A stretch of 64,000 nucleotides of DNA from Salpingoeca rosetta (Eukaryota; Protista; Choanoflagellata): NCBI GenBank assembly GCA_033442325.1, contig JAWQFM010000005.1:611327-675326 (forward strand), written 5' to 3'. Under the pieces are notes generated by a model. It was given only the letters and a program-made list of their open reading frames with translations, had not been told where the DNA came from and did not search any database. Shown here one piece after another: positions 1-22,244 of the stretch (position 1 is the first letter of the stretch; the number at the start of each line of letters is the position of its first letter). Both the position numbers and the translations under genes were made by a program.

Positions 1-119
1 CAGGAATGGAACGTGTGGCATGCATGATGAGTTGGGGTCATGGGTGTGATCATGATCGTGAGCGAGTGAATGCACCTCTTTCTCACATACGCACGGTTGA
101 GCGCGTTGACGATAACGCA

Positions 120-161
<42 letters not shown>

Positions 162-199
162 GCAAACACGCACGCAAACACACACACACACACGCACGC

Positions 200-240
<41 letters not shown>

Positions 241-723
241 GCAAACACGCACACACACACAATCTGTCTTTCTTCTGCGCTCACCAACGGAGGAGAAGAA
301 GATGGCGAGGAAGAGGTCCTTGACGGGATCGACCAGATGCAGAATACGCGACAGGTTCGACGATACGCCGTCGTGCTGCGTTCATGTATGAGACAGAGAA
401 AGAGAGTATGCAAGTGTGCATATATGTGCGTCAGCATATGTGCATACGTGTGCATGTGTGTTGAACGTGGTGAGAGGCAGCGTGTGCTATGCATGGAATG
501 GCAGCCACAGTGCTCCCACAGAACATCCCAATCATCACTCTTCAGCCCACGACAGCCTGCAACACCGCACGACAATGCATGCACCCACCGCATGCTCTGC
601 TTGAATACGGCCACCGGCAATGCTGAACATCAGGCCCGCAACGAAGCAGCCAAGCTCCATCGACACCTGAACGGGAACACCACGCGTTGTTTGGGGCTCT
701 CGTGACACACATGGTTCGACGTC

Positions 724-761
<38 letters not shown>

Positions 762-2893
762 GTACAGATACAAGCGAACACACGCACACAGTGACAAGCA
801 CCAGCACGCGCAGATGCAACAACACATGTACACTGCAAAGCACCAACCTGCATGAACTCTGTGACTTTGAGCATGAGGATACAGATGGAGATGATGGCGA
901 GCAGACGCGTTGGGATGTCCAGCGAGTGGAGGTGGTGCATCAGTCGCTCAACCACAAACTGCAGACACACACACACACACACACACATACACACACCATG
1001 TCACAAGCGAGTGTGAGCGGTTGCGTTCACGTGTGCATGAACAATCACAAGCGCATCAACTTGCACGCTGGCTGGTTGTGTGTGTATGTGTATGTGTGTT
1101 TTTGTATGTGTTTGTATGAGTGTGTTTGCTCTGACGATAGCCACGTCTTTGCAACTCATCGTACTTTGCTCAAGATGATGATGATGAGCCCTAGGAGGAT
1201 AAAACTTCCGATGAGACGAAACGTGATCCGCCCAATGTCCATCACATTAATCTGCAGCGAAAAGGCGACCAGTCAACACAGGTGAGTGCATGTGTGTGTG
1301 CGTGTGAGCATGTGCATGTGTGCGTGTGAGCATGTGGGATGTGTGTGTGTGTGCGTGCCACGCAGTGTGTCAAAACACCACAACGCAGGCAGTCTCGGGC
1401 CCATGCATGTACATCAACAGCGACTCCCCACTTCCACCACACGCACGCACACCTCATCGAAGGAGACGAGGAGGGGCAGGACGGCAATGATGACGCCCAA
1501 ATACACGTCTTGCATCAGCAGCACGCCGAGCAGGCCCCGCCCTGCAGGCAGTCGCAGCAAACACACGCGCAACGGGGAATACCGCACGTGCATGCAGGTC
1601 CAGTGAGTGCGAGAGGTGTAGGTGTGAGTGCGTGCATGTGCGTACGTGTGTGTGTGTGTGTCTGTGTCCGTGCGTGCGTGTGTATGTGCATGTGTGTGTG
1701 CATGTGCGTGTCTGTGTGCATGTGTGGAGGCATTCCGTGCGAGTCACGGTATCTGAGTGTGGCTGCAAGAGGTTGAACGCGCACCGTAGGGCTGCTCGTG
1801 GTCTGTTGGTGTGAGGTTGTTGGCGGCGACGGTTGTGCTCGAGAGCGATACAACGATGGCCACAAACAGCCTGGGAAACGAATCCATGTCATGAATACAC
1901 GGATAGACAGGCAGACGCCAGTAGAATCAGTTCAGCAGGCAGACGAGAAGAAACACACACATGCTTGCACGCACAGACACAGACACAGACACACACAGAA
2001 ACACACGCGCACACACGCACAGACACACACACACACAGACACAAAGGCAGCCTCACATCCCCCTCCCCAAAGCATGTGCGTGCTCACGTCTCTGAGAGCG
2101 GGCGCTCGAGGTATGAGCCGATGAAGCAGACGGCGGTGATGGTGAGAGCCATGATGAGCGTGCAGCCAATCACCGCAATCCGGAACATCTCCTTCAGTTT
2201 GCTCACAGAGAACTGCAGGGACAGAGGAAAGAGCAGGGTGGCAGGTGGTGGCGGTGGTGAGTGGTGGTGGAGATGAAGGAAAGCAATGGATCGTGTGGTA
2301 GTGAGTGCAGTTCTGAGTAGCTGAGGTGATTATTGATGGACACACGAGCACGCTTGTGCAGCAGAGTGATGATTGCACACACACACACACAAAAAAAAAA
2401 AAAACAAAAAAAAAACGCGTGCTTGGTGCGCACCTCCATTCCGAGCGTGAAGAGAACGAAGAACACGCCAAACTCCCCAATCGTGGTGATTTGCACAACC
2501 GACTGCAACAACAGGAACAAGAATAACACCAGTGGCAGCAAGACCACAACAGGCAATCATTGGAAGAAGGTCTGTGAGTGTACGAGCCAGTGAATGTGCA
2601 GTGCTTGCATGCATGATCCAACACATGCTATTTGACATCCACCCACGCCCACCCGATGCCTGCAAGCACTCACCGTGATGATGTTGAGGCCAGCAGGGCC
2701 CAGCAGCGTGCCCGCAATCACATACCCAACAAACCCAGGCAGGCTGAAGGGGAGGAAGGAATTGCCAGCAGATGGCGGTAATGGCAGTGATCATGGCGGT
2801 GGTTGAGCATTGATGACGTCATCCATTGGAGAAGAATGCAGTTGAGCAAGCGGATGGCAATTGCTTTAACTTTCACACACACTCACACACGCG

Positions 2894-2929
<36 letters not shown>

Positions 2930-3119
2930 TGCGCGCACTTGAGGTATTGGCAGGCGGCGCCGGCGACAAAGCAGCCAAAGAGGAGACTCAAGAGATCGTT
3001 GAGGAGGGAAAAGTCCTCAAGCAGATTCGTCGTGTCCGAGGGGCGGGCCAGCGCATACCTGATGGTGATGGGTTGGGGGTGATGATGTGGAGTGGGGTGG
3101 TCACGAGTGGTGGTGGTGG

Positions 3120-3175
<56 letters not shown>

Positions 3176-3246
3176 GCAACGGTGGGCCAACGCGGGCGAG
3201 TGCGATAGGGCGAGTAGTGGTGAACATGTCTTGCCGTCATGAGCAA

Positions 3247-3321
<75 letters not shown>

Positions 3322-3729
3322 GCACACACACACACAAGACAGTTGATCAGGTGGAGCAAGCTGAGGTGTCGCCCTACTGGTTGTTGTCTGCGTCCACGAG
3401 GAATGACATGTGTGCAACGTCGTTTCCCTTTCTGCGTGACTTTTCCTCCCTGATGTCCAAGCAACAGCACTCATCAGTCACATGTGTGCGTGTGTGCATG
3501 TGCATGTAGAGGTGCTTGTGCGTTTTGTTCTGTTCTGTGTGTATGTGTGTATGTGTGCTTGTGTGTGTGCGTGTGTCGACTCACTGAGCGGTCATTTCTG
3601 ACTCGTCGTGGCTCTCGATCTTCACGACGGTGATCAGCGACGAATCCTTCACCTGAACATACGCACACACGCACGCACACGCACACAGGCAAACACATGC
3701 GCACACAGGCAAACACACAGATACACATA

Positions 3730-3769
<40 letters not shown>

Positions 3770-5123
3770 GCCGTGGGTGCATGTGTGAGAGAGGTGATGG
3801 CACAGAGCAAGCAAGAGTCATACAAACGGCATCATAGGAAGCACGGGCGCCAGCGCTGCACGCACGTGCTGCGCTTTGATGTAGGCGTGGTCGTCCAGGA
3901 ACTGCTGCAGCGCTTTCGCTGCGCAGTGTCGATGCGGGAGGAGGGCGTGACGACGACGGTGTGAGGGATGGAGCAATGTACGCGCACGATGGCGAATGAG
4001 ATGACAGCGGTCATGTCGGTGACAAGCGATGCAACACAACAGGACATGAAAACTGGAAACGCACACACACACATCGACACACACACACATCGACACGCAC
4101 ACACACACACACAGAAAACACACACACACACACAAAACACCTCTTTGGCGTCCGTCTCAACTCTACAAAGAACCAACCAATAAACCAGCTAAACCAACAT
4201 CAACCAACCAAACCAAGCAACTAAGCCCTCCGCACCTTTGTCCTCGACGCGACTGAGGACCTGGTCCACGGAGTTTCGCTTGGCGGCAGTACCCTTCCTC
4301 GCATCCTCAAACGCCTCCAACTTCTGCTGGTTCTCCTGGAATTTCTCGAGCGCAGCGTGCTCCCGCATCTGGTGGGTAGATTCGACGTTAGGGGATGTGC
4401 ACTTTGGGTTAGTTTGCTGCGTGTGTGAGTGAGAGGTGTCGAGACTCGCCTACTCACTGACACAACCGCTCCGCTCGTCGTCGCACGTGCCATCATTTCA
4501 CCACCGTAACCACACTACAACCACCACCACCACCAACAACAACAACAGCCACCGGCATCTCACCGCCTGCACTTGGAGCTCTGCAATTCGCTTCCGTTGG
4601 TCGTCGAGATACTTGTCCTGCCACTGCTTGATTGCCTGGAGCGCCGGGTAATGGCGGGGGCATGCGGTGACGGGGATGGTGGTGATGGTGGTGGTGGATG
4701 GAAGGGAGGGGGGTGTTGGTCTGAGTGGAAGAGGAAGGACGTGATGACTCAGCTAATGCAGTTGTGGGTGCTTGTGCACAGTCACTCACAAGCGCAGCGG
4801 CAGCCGTGTCTGCCACTCCCAACGCCACCATCATCATCGCCATCATCATCACCACCATCATCGCCATCATCATCACCATCATCGTCATCACCATCATCAT
4901 CCTCACCTCGTATGATGAGAAATCGCTGTCGAGGACGGACTGGAGGTCGTGTGTCATCCGCACATACGCGTTGAAGGTGTTGTTGATGTGCTTCAGCGTC
5001 TGCGGCAGATGGTCGCGCGTTGTGCACCGGGATGAAGGATTGTGACGCGAGTGACGTGAGCCGACATGTCCATCGTTGCAAGCGCAACACGCCTTTGCAC
5101 ACAAACACACACACACACACACA

Positions 5124-5162
<39 letters not shown>

Positions 5163-5292
5163 GCACACACACACACACACACACACACGCGCACCATGTT
5201 GAGTGCTTGAATGTGGGCGGACTTTTCCTGGTCTGAGAGATCAGGCATCTTCTTAATCTCCCCCATCTGCTGCTGAAACTGAGACGCAACCT

Positions 5293-5388
<96 letters not shown>

Positions 5389-5810
5389 AAAAAAGGGAAA
5401 CGGGTGGTGCAGTACGATGAGGCGAGTCGCTTTCACATGGTGATACAAAGACAAGCAGTCGGCAAAAGAAAGCGCGCATATGCACACCTACCCACACACC
5501 CCCCCCCCCACACACACAGACCCACACCCACTCACATTTTGGGTGAGGAGCTTGTTGAGGCGCTTGGAGCGAAAAGTTGATTTGCAGGTCTGCAAAATGG
5601 GCGAGATCAGCATCCCCCTCTTCGGCATTGAGCACCTCTGCCAATGGCTTGGCAACCGTCGTGGTGGTCGTTGTCTTCTTCGTCTGTTATGGTCCAGTGC
5701 ATGCGATTGGGGTGATAGCGTGTGGTGGTGAGGGCTGGTGTGACGAAACAGAGAACGAGGGAGTGCGATGGATGCCACGAAGGCAAGGCTGAGTGCGAAC
5801 ATGCTGTTCA

Positions 5811-5852
<42 letters not shown>

Positions 5853-5864
5853 GACAGACAGACA

Positions 5865-5901
<37 letters not shown>

Positions 5902-6524
5902 ACATATGCAGACAAGCGCAAACGAACCTGAGACTCGTCTGCGCCCTCTGATTCTGACCCGTTCGCCCCGTTCCCGTCACCACCGTTAGCCGCTGCTGCT
6001 ACTCCTGTGTCCGTGCCATCGCTGCTTTGACCTTTGCTGATCTTGCCACCATTACCGCCTGTATCGCCATGGTTGCTGTCGTTGGCGCCAACTGAAGTGT
6101 CACTCCCTGTATCGCCCACAGCTGCATTGGCGTCGCCAGCGCCTATGGCATTCCCATCCTGCATGGCTGCACGCCGTTCCCGCGCGTGTGCGAGCCTGTT
6201 GAGGAGGAGTTCCTGCCTCGCCTGTCCGTCGAGCGAGCGTCCGCCTGCCACCGCATCAGTGCCGTCCGCCTGGCCGGTGAGGGTGTCGGCTGCGCCCTGT
6301 TCGCTGGTGAGGTGGCGTCGTCGCTGCCGGGTGCCATAGTTTGGGTTGACGTGCATGACCAAGCGTGAGGGAGAGGGGCTTGCTGCTGATGTGCTGTTGG
6401 ATGTGGGCGCCATTCGCAGCTGCTGCCCCGCAGTAACCAGCGCAGCATCGGACGGAGCTGCGTGTGAGATGGCCAGTAACACGATCAGCAGCAGCAGCAT
6501 CACTGGCCCGGTGCAAGCACGCAT
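1..6524 (-). CDS. TMCO3: TMCO3 / KEA4-6-like CPA2 cation:proton antiporter, multi-exon, 3' end runs off the window start
   Basis: Minus-strand exons give a signal peptide ([22 protein letters not shown]), coiled-coil exons ([37 protein letters not shown]), then antiporter motifs [111 protein letters not shown]. Start could be ATG 6524 or 6500. Confidence 0.88.
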
Positions 6525-6974
6525 GCTGAACAGTGCAGTTGGGCTCGTGCCCGTCTTGGTCTGCGGTCGAGTGCGCTTCAGCGCATGGAGTAGCGACGAC
6601 GCTGAGGCCTGCACAGGCCCTATCAATGATGTCAATGGTGAGGGCAATGACGACAGCGGCGACAGCGGAGATGGCAGCTGAAACCGCCTTCGTCCCCGCG
6701 GCCGCTGCCTGCGCTCTGATCGCTGCATCGCCAACCGCCTCACCGAAGAGGAGGTTGACGGAGTCGGTGTGGGAGTGGACCAGTGTTCTTAGAGAGTGTG
6801 TGACAGCGAGTGAGCGTGAGCTTGTTCCAAACGCGATACGAGTGTGGACGTGCGAGTGCGACGTGTGGTTTGGCGTTAGGAAGAGTGAGGACAGCGGTGG
6901 TGGGTTGGAAGTCAGCAATCACAACCGCATCATCATCATCATCCACGACAAAAAAAAAAACGAAAATCCCAAAC

Positions 6975-8173
<1,199 letters not shown>

Positions 8174-8750
8174 GCGCTGCATTCGCAATCGACATTGCCA
8201 TGTTGCGCAGGAACACACCGCACCACACGCCGCTTTGCTCTGCTGTTATGTTACTTCCACACGCGTGCGCGGTGCCTGCCCTGTACCCTTGTTTTCTTCT
8301 CCCCGCTTGCACTTGCGTTCCCTTTGGTTCGCGCTTCCACCCCACCATCGTCGACACACACACGAACCTGCGCGCACGGATGAACACAATCATTTTGGGG
8401 GTTTCTATTGCACACGGCTGGCTGGGTTGTGTATTCATTTACCTTGCTTGCCTGAACCCAACACACACACGCACACACATGCGCATGACAAAACAGCTCA
8501 CACGCGCGTGAAGTTGACAAGCACAACTGCTACTGTCGCTATTGTTGTTGTCGTTGCTGCTGCACATTAGATACAACGCTACCACAGTTCGCCACTGCAA
8601 CAAGGGCCACACATGAAGCACACACACACATGTGCATGCACATGGAGCACACGTGCACACACCTCTACAACACACACGCACATACAGATTCGCGTGTACG
8701 CCACACATGCCACCCCCTCCCCCCCAAGCTGCTGCTGCTGCTGCTGCTGC

Positions 8751-15895: not shown

Positions 15896-16289
15896 GAGCT
15901 GTAGAATCGCGTGTCATCGTCAAAGCCGTGTGCCTTCTTCACGCAGAACACTTCCACTTGTTACAACCCTCACCTTCTTCCCCTTTTGACACACACACAC
16001 ACACGCACACATACACACACACACACAATTGCGTAGTGCGTGCACGGTGGCCTGTTCTCTGAGGACGGTGTGAAGGTTGACCAACTGCGCACCATCAAGC
16101 GCAACTGCCAGCCGCCGGACCACGGCCTCATGTGAGGCGCCATCCTGCATGCATGCCACGCATGTGGTTTGGAGGTGGAGGCGGGAGAGGTGTGGTGAAT
16201 TGTGGAATGGGGGACTCGGTTTTGGTGCTGTGATGGTTCTATCGCTTGTCGCTTGTGGCTTCAACCATGTATCATTCACACGCGCACAC

Positions 16290-16386
<97 letters not shown>

Positions 16387-16571
16387 ACATGCAGGTGCGA
16401 GATGCTGTGGTCTGATCCGCAGCCCATGCCGGGCCGCGCCCCGTCCCTTCGTGGCGTCGGCACGCGGTTTGGCCCAGATATCACCGCCGCCTTCCTCGAC
16501 GACAACGACCTCAAGCTCGTCATCCGCAGCCACGAGGTGCGTGCGGTGTGTGTGTATGTGTGTGTGTGTGT

Positions 16572-16632
<61 letters not shown>

Positions 16633-16680
16633 AGAGAGAACAAGAGACAGAGAGAGACAGAGAGAGACAGACAGACAGAC

Positions 16681-16715
<35 letters not shown>

Positions 16716-16720
16716 GAGAC

Positions 16721-16779
<59 letters not shown>

Positions 16780-16790
16780 GACAGACAGAC

Positions 16791-16859
<69 letters not shown>

Positions 16860-17467
16860 CAGAGATAGACGCACACGCAGGCACACGCAGAGACTGTGTC
16901 TGCCCGCACCGTTGCTCGCATTGCAGCCCCCAGAATTTCATCTGCCGCGCTCGTTCACCTGACAGATGAAGGAGGAAGGCTACGAGATTGCGCACGATGG
17001 CAAGTGCATCACCATCTTCAGCGCTCCAAACTACTGGTACGTTTGCCGTGTTGCCTGCAAGCATGATCATTGCAGTGTGGACGACCAGGCCTTACACCGT
17101 GCCCGTGGTCCTTGATTCTTTGTTCGCTCACAACAAACCTGCGTCCCCACGACGACCACCATGACAACAACACGCGTTTGCGCTGGCAGCGACTCCATGG
17201 GCAACAAGGGCGCGTTCATCAAGCTGGACAAGCGGCACGAGCCCGAGATTGTGCAGTTTGAGGCCGTGGTATGTCGTTGGGGAAGGAGCCGTGTTTGGGA
17301 GGGGGGGGGGAGAGGGAACGAGATGGAGGGGAGGAACAATGATCGTCTTCCTGTTGCCATTGACTCATACACAATATCTCTCTTGCTTGCACACACACAT
17401 GCAGCCGCATCCGGATGTGAAGCCGATGGCGTTTGCCGGCGGCCTGTCATCTCTGCTTGGGTTCTAA
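12325..17467 (+). CDS. PPP5C: Serine/threonine protein phosphatase 5 (TPR + PPP catalytic domain), many exons
   Basis: TPR exons [51 protein letters not shown]; catalytic motifs [63 protein letters not shown]; C-terminal [11 protein letters not shown]. Confidence 0.97.
14438..14531. repeat. (TTG)n microsatellite in a PP5 intron
   Basis: About 30 perfect TTG units. Confidence 0.95.
15192..15247. repeat. Direct tandem duplication of about 28 bp in a PP5 intron
   Basis: tcactctctcgcttactcggattctgac occurs twice in tandem. Confidence 0.9.
16291..16385. repeat. (CAA)n microsatellite in a PP5 intron
   Basis: About 31 CAA units just upstream of a 3' splice site. Confidence 0.95.
16576..16858. repeat. 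Compound (GA)n-(GACA)n-(GA)n microsatellite
   Basis: Directly visible; similar tracts at about 13065-13220 and, in the complementary orientation, 42995-43185. Confidence 0.95.
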
Positions 17468-17886
17468 ATGCGTGAGTGCGTGCGCGTTGGTGCTTCACAC
17501 CTTGTCGCGTCCCATCTTTGATGGACAGAGCTCGTCTTCCTTCTCTTCTTCGCTTTCCCAGTGCACACTCGCTTTGTTTGACGTTGCCGTCGTAGCGTAA
17601 AGTAAACCCGTTGTCGTTGACTTGATTGGGAGGAGTGCGATTTACTTGTTGGGAGGGTGTAACAGACGGGAGAGACAGACACCCAGAGAGTGTGTGTGCA
17701 TGTGTTTTCACTTGAAAACAACAGCACGGAAGCAAGAACAGAAGAATAGCAGCAGAGCAAAGAACCAGGCAAACGCCGGAGAAAGAAACAACATAAACAT
17801 ACACGCGCAGGTAGAGTGCTTAGAGTGATGGGCGGCGGGTTTAGGGAGAAGGAGATGGGCTGCGAGCATTGGCGAGCTCGGCCTGT

Positions 17887-18879
17887 TCAGCACTTGTGCG
17901 CCTTGCGGGCTTTCTGCACGACATCATCCACAAGCTGCTTCAGGTGAAATGGGTCACGAGCAAGAGGCCCGTCATCCTCTTCGGCATCAATGGCATTGTT
18001 GTTGACGGCGAAAAGGGGGTAGTTGCACTCAGCAAGGTGGAAGGTTTCGCGAACGCTGTGAAGGACTTGGTTCACAGCATCGTCCTTATTGAATTTCCTC
18101 GGGTCGTTCCCTGCTCGCCGCCAAGCACGTCGCTCCTCGGTGATAGTTTCGTCCATGTGCGTGCGCACAAGGGCAGCAGGCAGGCGGTATTTCGGCAATC
18201 GTCGCAAGACGTCGTGGAGACCAGCTGACTCTGTTGATCCAAAGGCGAACACCGTGTAACTGATAAAGCGCAGGCCCATCTGCGCCACGTAGAAAGAGGA
18301 TGGATGGTCGGGTGTGTCCATCCCCGGCAGGTCCCAGAGAATGAGCTGGTTGAAACGGCGCGGGGTCGGTGCGCGCTTGTCGTTGTGTGTCGTGGGCGGG
18401 TCATCCTGGCACACGTGTGCGAAAGTCTCCTTAACACGAGGCAGAAAACCGGGGTCTTCATACGCGACTCCTTGGCCGAGGACAATGAGTACACAGCGAA
18501 AGATGCAGGTCAAGGATGTCTTCCCAGAATTGTTGGGGCCAGCCACACCAACGTGGTAGAAGCTGCTGAAGTTCTCGTTGGGGAAGTGCTGCTTGAAGAT
18601 GACACGCAACGGGTTCATGCAAGCGTCGGTCGGGCAAGCAAGGGGCATGTCGGGGATGCGGGCAACTGTCATGCAACCACGCCTTTGAAGCAGGACCTCC
18701 ACATCTGTGTCTGTACTTGTATCCGGGCCTGCCTCAGGTTGTACGTCTTGCTCGGTCGGAATGAAATTCTGGCTTGGATCGGCTTCATTCTGCGGAGAAT
18801 CACGAAACCACCAGTGATAGGCGGCGTAGCCTGCAGAGCCAACGATTCCAACAATCAAACCACCAATCACAAACTCCAT
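17887..18879 (-). CDS. Intronless P-loop GTPase, interferon-inducible (IRG/IIGP)-like, N-terminal membrane anchor (paralog A, 330 aa)
   Basis: Clean 330-aa ORF; hydrophobic N-terminus MEFVIGGLIVGIVGSAGYAAYHWWF; G1 VGVAGPNNSGKTS, G3 LILWDLPGM, G4-like LVRTHMD (IRG consensus LWDLPG and VRTKxD). Confidence 0.8.
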   Translation of the reverse strand: MEFVIGGLIVGIVGSAGYAAYHWWFRDSPQNEADPSQNFIPTEQDVQPEAGPDTSTDTDVEVLLQRRGCMTVARIPDMPLACPTDACMNPLRVIFKQHFPNENFSSFYHVGVAGPNNSGKTSLTCIFRCVLIVLGQGVAYEDPGFLPRVKETFAHVCQDDPPTTHNDKRAPTPRRFNQLILWDLPGMDTPDHPSSFYVAQMGLRFISYTVFAFGSTESAGLHDVLRRLPKYRLPAALVRTHMDETITEERRAWRRAGNDPRKFNKDDAVNQVLHSVRETFHLAECNYPLFAVNNNAIDAEEDDGPLARDPFHLKQLVDDVVQKARKAHKC

Positions 18880-19429
18880 GGCTAGAGGAGATAGCTTGTC
18901 AGGTCCTCAAGCACAGAAGTGCAGAAGTTGCAGGCACAGAGCAAATGACAAATGGCGACACTTCTCCGAGTTTGACTGCCCTTTCGTCTTGTTGTGTGCG
19001 TGGGCATCGCTGGTGTGTCACATAACCAAAACTCATTCGCGACCCACACATGCAGAACGGTTACATACAGCCTTACTCCTGTCCCTGCCTCTGGGGTGGT
19101 GCTGTGTCAGTGATGTGACTGTGCCAAAGTCAGTGGACATGACCAATGTGTCATGTCATATTGTGGGATAGGTTGGTACAAAATTGAGGTGAACCGCAAC
19201 CAACTGCCAGTGTGACTGTGCAATTATTCTCAATGCTCGCGGTAGCACGGTGCTCTTGGCTGGTGGTCTTTGTGGAGGGGAAGTGCGAGCACTGCCTGAG
19301 CACATGAGCATTTGTCGCAATCCCCTCCGTTCCACAAGTCTGCCAGTTCGCCCTTACAAGTGCACTTCCTCCATGATCCCCATCGTCGCAGGGACTGGGC
19401 TGTGGTGCATGTTTTCCTCGCATGCAAAC

Positions 19430-20341
19430 ATGTTGGAGTGGGTAATGAGCACAGGAAGTTCATGCTTTGGTTTTGGTGTCAGCGATGGCACGGACGCGGA
19501 CGACACACATGGCGACAGCCCCTATTACCTCCACGACTCAGACCAGGCACAGGAGAGAGGCGGCACGCCACCACCCAGGACCGGCTCAAAGAAGAGTGAC
19601 AACCCGCTTGTATCCATCTTGGAGAAGGCGTTCCCGAACGCCAAGTTCAGCCGGTTGCGTCACATTGCAGTTGTCGGCGCCCCATGTTCGGGCAAAACGA
19701 CATTGCTGCACGTGCTCCGCGCCGGTGTTGAGAAGCTCAACGGCGACAGCGAGCCTGCAGGCCGCTCCCACCACCACAGAGACAGAGGCAGAGACGGAGC
19801 ACGAGACCAGCCAGCCCCGTTTCGCGCTGGACACCGCGTGTACTGGGACATGCCCGCCCTGGGGATGACAGAGCAGACTGCGCAGGAATATTTCAGCGCT
19901 GTCGGCCTCCATTCAGTGGACCTCATTGTTTTCGCAATTGGAACAACAGAGACAAAGGCCACTCATGACGCCATCGAGGAGGCGCATTTGCAGCAAGTGC
20001 CATCCATTGTGGTGCAGACGCACATGGACACCATCGCAGCAAAGGAGCGTGTCGCCTGGAGGCGAAGTGGCAAAGCACTTGGTGCGTTCAATGTCGAAGA
20101 TGCCAGTCGCCAATACATAGAGTATGTCAAGCAAACCTACAGGCTTGACGAGTTCCAGTTTCAGCTGTTTGGTGTGAACGGCATCGCCAACGTGGAGGAG
20201 GAGCATCCTTTACAACGACACCTGTTTCAACGGCAACAACTCGCAGAGTGGGTGGACAAGCGCACACAGCTTCACCTCAAACAAGGCTGGTTTAGCACAT
20301 TATGGTTTTGGAAGGGCGTCGAATCGAAGCGGTTTGTGTGA
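19430..20341 (+). CDS. Intronless P-loop GTPase-like protein, IRG/IIGP-like (paralog B); start codon uncertain (19304, 19374, 19430 or 19445)
   Basis: G1 IAVVGAPCSGKTT, G3 variant VYWDMPAL, G4-like VVQTHMD. Colinear with paralog A: NPLVSILEKAFPNAKFS / NPLRVIFKQHFPNENFS, VFAIGTTE / VFAFGSTE, ERVAWRRSG / ERRAWRRAG, LFGVN / LFAVN. Confidence 0.78.
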   Translation: MLEWVMSTGSSCFGFGVSDGTDADDTHGDSPYYLHDSDQAQERGGTPPPRTGSKKSDNPLVSILEKAFPNAKFSRLRHIAVVGAPCSGKTTLLHVLRAGVEKLNGDSEPAGRSHHHRDRGRDGARDQPAPFRAGHRVYWDMPALGMTEQTAQEYFSAVGLHSVDLIVFAIGTTETKATHDAIEEAHLQQVPSIVVQTHMDTIAAKERVAWRRSGKALGAFNVEDASRQYIEYVKQTYRLDEFQFQLFGVNGIANVEEEHPLQRHLFQRQQLAEWVDKRTQLHLKQGWFSTLWFWKGVESKRFV

Positions 20342-20953
20342 CAACTTGGACGATGCAGTTCATGGACATCCCTGTCATTGCGTGCACTCGTTGCGTATGG
20401 GTCAATGTAGGACGCCCTGCACCTCTTTCCTCCTCTCTTACTTGCTTTCTTTCTTTCTTTGCTTCCTTCTCCAAATAAACCCAACATCATCCATCCACAA
20501 ATCCACAACCAGAGCAGAACCGTCACGTTCGCTCCCATTGTCACAAACAGGATGATGCGCAGTACGATTCTTTTACTCCTTCCTTCCTCCCACAACCAAC
20601 AATATGAACAACAACAGCAGCAGCAGCATTTAACACCACAAACCACGCGACGTCTGCATTGCATCGCACCACCTCCCCTTCCCACGCAACCGCGCGCACG
20701 AGCTTCAAATGACAAACTGCGACGGCAGAGGGGATCCGTTGTTGACTTCCAGCCGGCGGTGCCTCTCCTCCCTCGCCTTCTCCTGCACGCGCACGTGCCA
20801 GTGGGGGATAGCATTATTCAATCCGTGAGACACGCAAGAAAGAAACACCCTTGTCACACAACAACGGGAAACCTTCAAGCCTTGTCACTTTGTCATGCCC
20901 GCGTTTCGTACCTTTTCTGCAGCCTTCGTGGCGCCAGCCCACATGTCCCTGCG

Positions 20954-21029
<76 letters not shown>

Positions 21030-21126
21030 GACGAGGACAGAGTTGGTGAGCGCACAGCAACCGCACATTCGGTATCCCATCGCGACCCACATACACCGCC
21101 CCCCAAGCAAGGGGTGAAAGGAGCCA

Positions 21127-21172
21127 TCAGGGAGCAAGGCTACTGTGCATGATGCGTTGTTGCTGTTGTTGC

Positions 21173-21221
<49 letters not shown>

Positions 21222-22244
21222 GGTTGTTGGTTGGTTGGTTGTTGGTTGGTTGTTTGTTTGTTTGTTTGTCTGTTTGTTTGTTTGTTTGTTTGTTTGTTTG
21301 TTTGTTTGTTTGTTTGTTTGTTTGTTTGTTTGTTTGTCTGTTTGTTTGTTTGTTTGTTGTTGTTGTTATTTGTTGGCTGATGTTGTTGCTGCTGTTTTCT
21401 TCCTTACCCTGTGCGGGGAACGCCGTGTTTGTCCAGAAGGTCGTCCAGTCGCTCGCGTCGGCTCAGCAGCGCGTGGTGGCCGCTCTGCAATGCAACACAA
21501 GGAGCAAGACATTGATACTCAGTGACATGGAAATGAAACGAACACCAGACACCACACGAGCAGCACCTGCCTGCCACGGCCGCACCTGTCGCTTCTCTGG
21601 CGTTGCATTCCTTGACACGGGGCCGCTAATCATGGATGTCTGCGCAGATGGACGGCGCGACGAGCGACGGCTCTGACATGCGTATGTGTATGTGTATGTG
21701 TATGTGCGTGTGTGTGAGCATGCGATTGGCAATCGCAGCAACCAACAACACCAGAAGCAAGGAAGCACAGAAGCAAGAAAGCAAGGAAGCACAGAAGCAA
21801 GGAAGCACAGAGGCAAGGTACAAAGCTTGCTCTATCCATCAGCTCCTTCGTCACGACTCACGTCATACCACGACGAGGACAGGTCACGCGCCGAGCGCAG
21901 CACCGCCAGCTCATCGTTCTGCACACAACAAACAAGAACACACATACACACGAACGTGATGAATGAGTCAAAACGAAAGCAAAGGAAGCAAATGAGAACG
22001 AGGACCAGGCGAAGAGCAAGCAGGCCAAACGCTTGCCGTACACAACCACATATCACACCACACAACAACACACAACACACAACACACCTTCAAGCTCAGC
22101 TCGTGGGACAGGTACATGATTTCGGAATCGCGCTGGTCCAGCAGTTCCTGCCGTCCATTTAGTAGCATCAACATAATCAGAGACAGAACCATGAATGTGA
22201 GAGATGAACAGCATTTCAATTCCATTCCTTTTGTACTGCGCTCG

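Follow-up and report, generated by a model that had tools for sequence, protein, structure and literature searches.

Does a choanoflagellate encode immunity-related GTPases (IRGs), and could two of them form a defence module? The question is raised by a 64,000-nucleotide stretch of the Salpingoeca rosetta genome (contig JAWQFM010000005.1, positions 611,327 to 675,326 of the forward strand; the whole of it is called the window below), in which two GTPase genes, here named A and B, lie head to head. An original prediction, made from the letters, had read them as IRG/IIGP-like and as a co-regulated two-gene immunity module. How the vertebrate IRG resistance system arose has been described as obscure (PMC1297648). 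We find that both proteins are true homologs of IRG/IIGP-type GTPases at the level of the GTPase (G) domain, that they belong to a distinct clade of anchored, G-domain-only proteins with a motif signature of its own, and that the S. rosetta pair combines a competent with a degenerate member.

Both genes encode an IRG-type G domain

The two genes are, as expected, an intact and divergently transcribed pair of single-exon paralogs. Their translations are identical, letter for letter, to the public gene models on S. rosetta scaffold GL832957.1 (assembly GCA_000188695.1), and because these models equal uninterrupted open reading frames (ORFs), both genes are annotated as single-exon. The proteins are colinear, with 33% identity over 237 residues (E 2e-37). 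Between positions 17001 and 21000 the longest open frame runs to 382 codons, whereas the longest frames of 300 shuffles average 154 codons and never exceed 309, and no third copy of the gene lies within the window. Translation bears out the G1, G3 and G4 motifs that had been noted for each protein (Table 1), and the gap between the genes, put at about 0.4-0.55 kb, measures 550 bp between the two ATGs and shrinks to 370 bp if the in-frame GTG at 19250 starts gene B.

Among Pfam families, IIGP (PF05049) is the best for both proteins, with 25.1 bits against a cut-off of 24, and databases already assign it to both. MMR_HSR1 appears for B alone, with 15.8 bits and under its cut-off, while Septin and AIG1 are absent from the Pfam matches of A and B even at E 10; in the profile comparison that the original prediction had called for, IIGP thus ranks on top. 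In a sequence search of solved structures, A matched Irga6 best (E 1.6e-3) and B matched Irgb6 best (E 8.7e-5). When 1.84 billion proteins were searched with a two-sequence profile of A and B, 141 matches were obtained, comprising a close subfamily together with undisputed IIGP proteins. The latter score 100-379 bits on IIGP; an Armillaria protein, for example, is matched by the pair profile at E 1.5e-16 and has an IIGP score of 170 bits of its own. Alignment by hhalign of the subfamily with 24 canonical IIGP G domains gives a probability of 99.85% over 177 columns (E 1.1e-30). Word-index protein searches with A, B or the family alignment brought back little besides the queries themselves, the alignment search being swamped by low-complexity words.

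The fold was modelled with AlphaFold2 (AF2). As a single sequence, A gave an uninformative result (predicted local distance difference test, pLDDT, 42.5), and an alignment of 130 sequences gave a model of residues 77-330 with a pLDDT of 93.1 and a predicted template-modelling score (pTM) of 0.90. Its 33 best Foldseek matches in the Protein Data Bank are all IRGs. VIA-align superimposes it on Irga6 residues 68-252 with a Z of 18.2 and a root-mean-square deviation of 2.8 over 181 residues; IRGs occupy ranks 1-15 (Z 15.3-18.2), and mitofusin and EngB come next at Z 15.2. A housekeeping GTPase family was rejected as the best assignment, since MMR_HSR1 stays under its cut-off, neither Septin nor AIG1 is among the matches, and the EngB, EF-Tu and Arf folds score under the IRGs.

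A separate clade with a predicted membrane anchor

IRGs are defined by a G domain that is embedded in a bipartite helical domain, formed by helices alphaA-C and alphaF-L (PMC4774019). Only Irga6 residues 68-256, from the G domain to the start of the linker, are covered by the structural alignment of A, and the protein has its end at this point. The region before its G domain consists of the anchor and a stretch that we take as disordered, and the bipartite helical domain is absent. A maximum-likelihood tree calculated from 66 G domains places the close relatives of A and B on one side of a split (Shimodaira-Hasegawa-like approximate likelihood ratio test, SH-aLRT, 100; stem length 1.84) and all other retrieved IIGP domains, which were sampled from fungi, animals and other sources, on the opposite side. 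Because they have no helical domain and fall in a separate clade, A and B are not p47 IRGs proper. The IRG/IIGP-like assignment of the original prediction therefore stands for the G domain, on the evidence of Pfam, hhalign and the fold, and does not extend to the p47 family itself. The phylogeny proposed along with it splits off the clade with 100% support, in a tree that is unrooted and in which most tips lack taxon labels.

The named members of this clade are all choanoflagellates (Choanoeca perplexa, C. flexa and Salpingoeca urceolata), and the rest are environmental or run-assembly sequences. Among the approximately 20 members whose source was looked up, S. rosetta supplies only A and B. 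The members share an architecture in which an N-terminal hydrophobic segment and a basic, Pro-rich stretch, both present in most of them, lead into an acidic low-complexity tether, which varies in length, and then into the G domain, directly before which stand a Trp and an NPL motif. The family motifs are GxQGxGKT at G1, WD[LM]PG at G3 and QTHxD, with His for the usual Lys, at G4. Switch I carries an invariant D-x-R-x-PTP after an insert helix of about 19 residues, and an invariant His closes the final helix. None of the family genes seen has an intron, and sequence divergence within the family is rapid, as judged from the tree. Since positive charges follow the hydrophobic segment, the positive-inside rule suggests that the G domain faces the cytosol.

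Many members (P0008, P0009, P0015, P0017, P0020 and P0142) start with Met-Gly, often with Ser at position 6, immediately ahead of the hydrophobic segment. This start resembles that of Irga6, which is N-myristoylated. Gene A starts with Met-Glu and is without the Met-Gly feature.

IIGP domains otherwise occur in fungi, rotifers, an amoeba and bacteria. A metagenome scan of limited sensitivity found only a second copy of P0017, and a prokaryote genome scan, also of limited sensitivity, found only P-loop matches of 24-45 residues in cyanobacteria (a Synechococcus metagenome-assembled genome, Microcoleus and Oscillatoriales, on contigs L010-L014). We count no prokaryotic member of the subfamily because these matches are confined to the short P-loop region. 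Bekpen et al. 2005 reportedly mention IRG-like GTPases of cyanobacteria; the P-loop matches obtained here are no evidence of subfamily membership. A search for literature linking IRG or IIGP proteins to choanoflagellates found nothing relevant.

A rival explanation is that the family moves between choanoflagellates and large DNA viruses, the intronless S. rosetta genes stemming from a viral insertion or having been captured by viruses. We consider this rather improbable. The location of two members on compact, gene-dense contigs (L004 and L003) and the lack of introns in all family genes seen would suit such an exchange, but four scans of IMG/VR (with P0018, P0017, a neighbouring ORF and alignment A5) returned no viral relative, no viral hallmark gene was identified, and the S. 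rosetta pair lies among ordinary host genes and has a host-like GC content (0.56; window, 0.55).

As to the two contigs themselves, the P0018 gene lies at L004:1886-3103 on an 8.6-kb contig (Logan SRR29965077_2103, 1-8596) with a GC content of 34%, nearly the whole of which is tiled by ORFs. A ParB-like nuclease and a C5 DNA methyltransferase adjoin the gene, and this organisation looks viral or mobile-element-like, not choanoflagellate-like. P0017, a protein of 685 residues with a long repeat-rich tether, is encoded at L003:10001-12058; L003:1-22058 is part of the 51-kb contig k141_966060 (ENA ERZ27247970). In these 22 kb, 27 genes are tightly packed; most are ORFans, the others carry zf-MYND, SET and ABC-transporter domains, and this may be a giant-virus contig. 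The G domain of P0017 recurs at 100% identity on a JGI contig (L009:840-1673).

Gene A is canonical for the family and gene B is degenerate

G3 and G4 are exactly 60 residues apart in A and B and, by our own count, equally so in Irga6 (D126 to D186). G1 and G3 are separated by 63 residues in A, 51 in B and 44 in Irga6, the longer spacing in A and B being due to the switch I insert. At G4, the canonical [NT]KxD is replaced by THxD in A, B and most of the subfamily, with Lys changed to His and the Asp kept. The catalytic Glu of Irga6 (E106) and the G2 Thr map by hhalign to variable columns that lie beside the invariant D167 and R169.

In the family alignment, A has retained without exception the invariant and near-invariant residues of the P-loop, the switches and G4. 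B, by contrast with A, is the sole deviator among 19 family members at D167 (Gly), T172 (Ala) and G186, the G3 glycine (Ala). Of the 32 conserved family columns it nevertheless keeps 25, among them those of the P-loop, G4 and the terminal His, and these columns, together with an open frame of 303-363 codons, argue for past constraint on the gene. We take B as probably either a hydrolysis-dead partner or a copy in decay. The two proteins also differ at their ends. The predicted anchor of A has a Kyte-Doolittle mean of 1.6-1.7 over 19 residues, and B has no such anchor; this absence and the switch changes of B went unremarked in the original prediction. B ends in a Trp-rich extension past the end point of all other family members, and this tail may bind membranes. 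A C-terminal transmembrane anchor in B was rejected, because no more than about 12 residues of the tail are hydrophobic, and these weakly so (mean 0.39).

A and B are sisters in the tree (SH-aLRT 93), with branch lengths of 1.01 for A and 1.92 for B. They therefore arose by duplication within the S. rosetta lineage, and B evolved faster afterwards.

Proposed roles of the two proteins

We favour, as the fairly probable reading, that the locus holds lineage-specific head-to-head duplicates, of which A is an active anchored GTPase and B a poor hydrolyser that regulates A or is decaying. Its kept residues and its anchor predict that A would be an active GTPase held at the cytosolic face of an internal membrane. 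It would act through GTP-dependent dimerisation of its G domain, by analogy with IRG, dynamin and septin-class GTPases; such G-G dimerisation is established for Irga6 and for the dynamin and septin classes (PMC4774019). B, which keeps the P-loop and the guanine-specificity motif and has lost three switch residues and the anchor, is predicted to bind nucleotide and to hydrolyse it poorly. It could then either regulate A by heterodimerising with it or be heading toward loss.

Several points weigh against this reading of the locus, and the first of them come from expression. Three stranded RNA sequencing (RNA-seq) runs of unchallenged cultures, of about 1.5 billion letters each, were mapped to positions 17100-20900. 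The PP5-type phosphatase gene next to A is covered at its 3' end to a depth of 50-90, whereas A has about 2 sense-strand reads, in one run of the three, and B has zero reads, as has the intergenic region 18880-19429. In a fourth run, available as contigs, most of the A coding region is covered at a depth of 3-4, there is no intergenic contig, and B is touched only by 26 letters of an unrelated contig. Under these conditions A is weakly expressed at best and B is not detectably expressed. This near-silence fits inducible genes and equally genes of little current use, and the zero expression of B, taken with its long branch and lost residues, also fits a pseudogene. Further, the single-sequence Pfam scores are marginal (25.1 against 24), and the catalytic geometry is uncertain because the canonical Glu and the G2 Thr map to non-conserved columns. 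The biochemistry and localisation of A and B are predictions from sequence, and the N-terminus of A could be a cleaved signal peptide instead of an anchor.

Should B be a decaying or non-functional duplicate, A would be the only working gene. Zero reads in three runs and the lack of a contig in the fourth are what such a copy would give, and the loss of the anchor and of three otherwise near-invariant switch residues, along with a branch about twice that of A, points in the same direction. We nonetheless hold this explanation to be rather improbable: the frame is intact over 303-363 codons despite 67% divergence, the conserved columns that remain include the P-loop, G4 and the C-terminal His, and the GC content at third codon positions (GC3) is level with that of A (0.65 against 0.63).

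The co-regulated two-gene module of the original prediction is weakened by the comparison with other members of the family. On seven other contigs (L002-L008) the family gene stands without a paralog beside it in the available flanks, and as these genes are solitary, pairing is not a family trait; the sister relationship of A and B likewise speaks against a conserved module. Co-regulation is not borne out by the read counts of the two genes. We regard it as quite unlikely that the pair is a cell-autonomous immunity module attacking phagosome or pathogen-vacuole membranes in the manner of mouse IRGs. The true IRG-type G domains and the membrane association indicated by sequence would suit such a module, as would a competent and a degenerate paralog, which recall the GKS/GMS pairs and IRGQ (PMC1297648), and a near-silence in standard culture that is compatible with inducibility. 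However, the helical domain, which IRGs use for assembly (PMC4774019), is missing, the pair is not conserved, the family is neither expanded nor clustered (S. rosetta has 2 of the approximately 20 sourced members), co-expression is not seen in RNA-seq, and no paper was found that ties IRG or IIGP proteins to choanoflagellates. An immune role of A and B is possible, as an inference from their family.

A further explanation is that the family serves housekeeping, as a GTPase of organelle or membrane dynamics similar to an atlastin- or mitofusin-like tether, and has no defence role. A G domain that dimerises and is joined by a flexible tether to a transmembrane anchor would be well suited to such a task; mitofusin is the next-best fold match behind the IRGs, the genes on the seven other contigs are solitary and show no immune-style expansion, and the S. 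rosetta neighbours (PP5 and Tim17) are ordinary. Near-absent expression in culture, the restriction of named members to a few choanoflagellates and the rapid divergence inside the family argue the other way, and we hold this explanation to be not very probable.

The lineage-specific duplication of an anchored GTPase, with B as a poor hydrolyser or a copy on its way to loss, remains our preferred reading. It can be carried one step further, to a scheme in which A and B would form an infection-induced active/inactive heterodimeric switch on endomembranes and the clade would represent a minimal pre-metazoan IRG defence, possibly contested by large DNA viruses with copies of their own. We consider this scheme very unlikely.

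Features and surroundings of the locus

The coordinates of all features are collected in Table 1. The open frame of gene B extends over 19250-20341 on the plus strand, and the annotated start is the ATG at 19430. If the ATG at 19373 is used instead, the N-terminus gains a weakly hydrophobic stretch of 15 residues; no read of the three RNA-seq runs falls on B to decide between the ATGs.

Table 1. Coordinates in the window of genes A and B, their motifs and the region between them.
Feature	Position	Strand	Description
Gene A	17887-18879	-	330 aa, single-exon IRG-like GTPase with N-terminal anchor; ORF, public model, Pfam IIGP, family alignment
N-terminal hydrophobic Gly-rich segment of A, residues 1-22	18814-18879	-	predicted signal anchor
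Residues 106-330 of A	17890-18564	-	IRG-type G domain and one C-terminal helix ending in family-invariant His328; AF2, VIA-align
G1/P-loop of A, GPNNSGKT	18517-18540	-	translation
Switch-I signature of A, DKRAPTP	18361-18381	-	D167, R169 and T172 invariant or near-invariant in the family
G3 of A, WDLPG	18322-18336	-	translation
G4 of A, THMD (RTHMD in context)	18151-18162	-	His for canonical Lys, family-typical
Intergenic region between the start codons of A and B	18880-19429	.	550 bp, shared 5' side; candidate bidirectional promoter
In-frame open extension 5' of B	19250-19429	+	ATGs at 19304 and 19373
Gene B	19430-20341	+	303 aa, single-exon paralog without N-terminal anchor, switch I and II degenerate; public model, Pfam IIGP
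G1/P-loop of B, GAPCSGKT	19676-19699	+	intact
Switch I of B, GARDQPAP	19796-19819	+	degenerate, family Asp to Gly and Thr to Ala; end at 19796 extrapolated from translated PAP at 19811-19819
G3 of B, WDMPA	19844-19858	+	DxxG glycine to Ala
G4 of B, THMD (QTHMD in context)	20018-20029	+	intact
Trp-rich C-terminal extension of B, 20 residues	20279-20338	+	past the end point of all other family members

The flanks of the pair are ordinary. The PP5-type phosphatase gene converges on A and an unannotated gene of 424 residues converges on B, and further out on the scaffold lie Tim17 and a CH+IRS protein. RNA reads confirm the phosphatase 3' end (17100-17620, plus strand) and show a GT..AG intron at 17268-17403; the polyA site, at 17620, is only 267 bp from the stop codon of the convergent gene A. 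Long simple repeats occur near the pair (window positions 16200-16900, approximately 20990-21050 and 21150-21400); they comprise a trinucleotide poly-Q/poly-N run and GA/GACA-type, (CA)n and CTG-type repeats, and they give many spurious ORFs on both strands.

Comparison with known systems

The closest solved fold and sequence to A and B are those of Irga6 (IIGP1) and the other p47 IRGs of the GKS class (Irgb6, Irgb10 and GM4951). WDLPG followed by a hydrophobic residue, the 60-residue distance from G3 to G4, a single coding exon and association with membranes, for A as a prediction, are common to both groups. The choanoflagellate proteins differ in that the N-terminal alphaA-C and the C-terminal alphaF-L helices are absent, G1 ends in GKT instead of GKS, G4 reads THxD instead of TKxD, and switch I has an insert of about 19 residues with the invariant D-x-R-x-PTP. 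They have a predicted transmembrane anchor where IRGs have a myristoyl group, and S. rosetta is not known to have an interferon system.

The GMS-class IRGM regulators and IRGQ are catalytically altered paralogs that stand beside competent ones and for which regulatory heterodimers have been proposed (PMC1297648). The degenerate B beside the canonical A is similar to this arrangement. B, however, is altered in its two switches and keeps the P-loop lysine, and it is a recent sister of A and not an old regulatory subfamily, in a pairing that is not conserved. The IIGP proteins of fungi (Armillaria, Pisolithus), rotifers and an acoel and the cyanobacterial IRG-like GTPases have the IIGP-type G domain in common with A and B, and the same profile that matched the relatives of A and B also retrieved those IIGP proteins. 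They lie on the other side of the 100% split, many have tandem G domains, and they carry GKS and [ST]KxD and no N-terminal anchor. The atlastin and mitofusin tethers and the GIMAPs are similar to A in having a G domain that, in A by prediction, is held by a transmembrane segment and acts by G-G dimerisation, a likeness that is one of analogy, not of membership. Their sequence homology to A and B is far weaker, and the position of the anchor and the accessory domains differ. Mitofusin is the best non-IRG fold match to A (Z 15.2).

The closest unicellular relatives of animals thus carry a distinct IRG-type GTPase, consisting of the G domain alone with a predicted membrane anchor, and the choanoflagellate clade is recognised by its THxD G4, its D-x-R-x-PTP switch I and its terminal His. 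Genetic tools exist for S. rosetta, so that the localisation and GTPase activity of the proteins and the phenotypes on infection are directly testable in this organism. If the role of the family proves not to be immune, it would still be an uncharacterised class of tethered GTPase. Within this clade, one lineage has produced a competent and a degenerate copy side by side, reminiscent of the effector and regulator logic of the IRGs.

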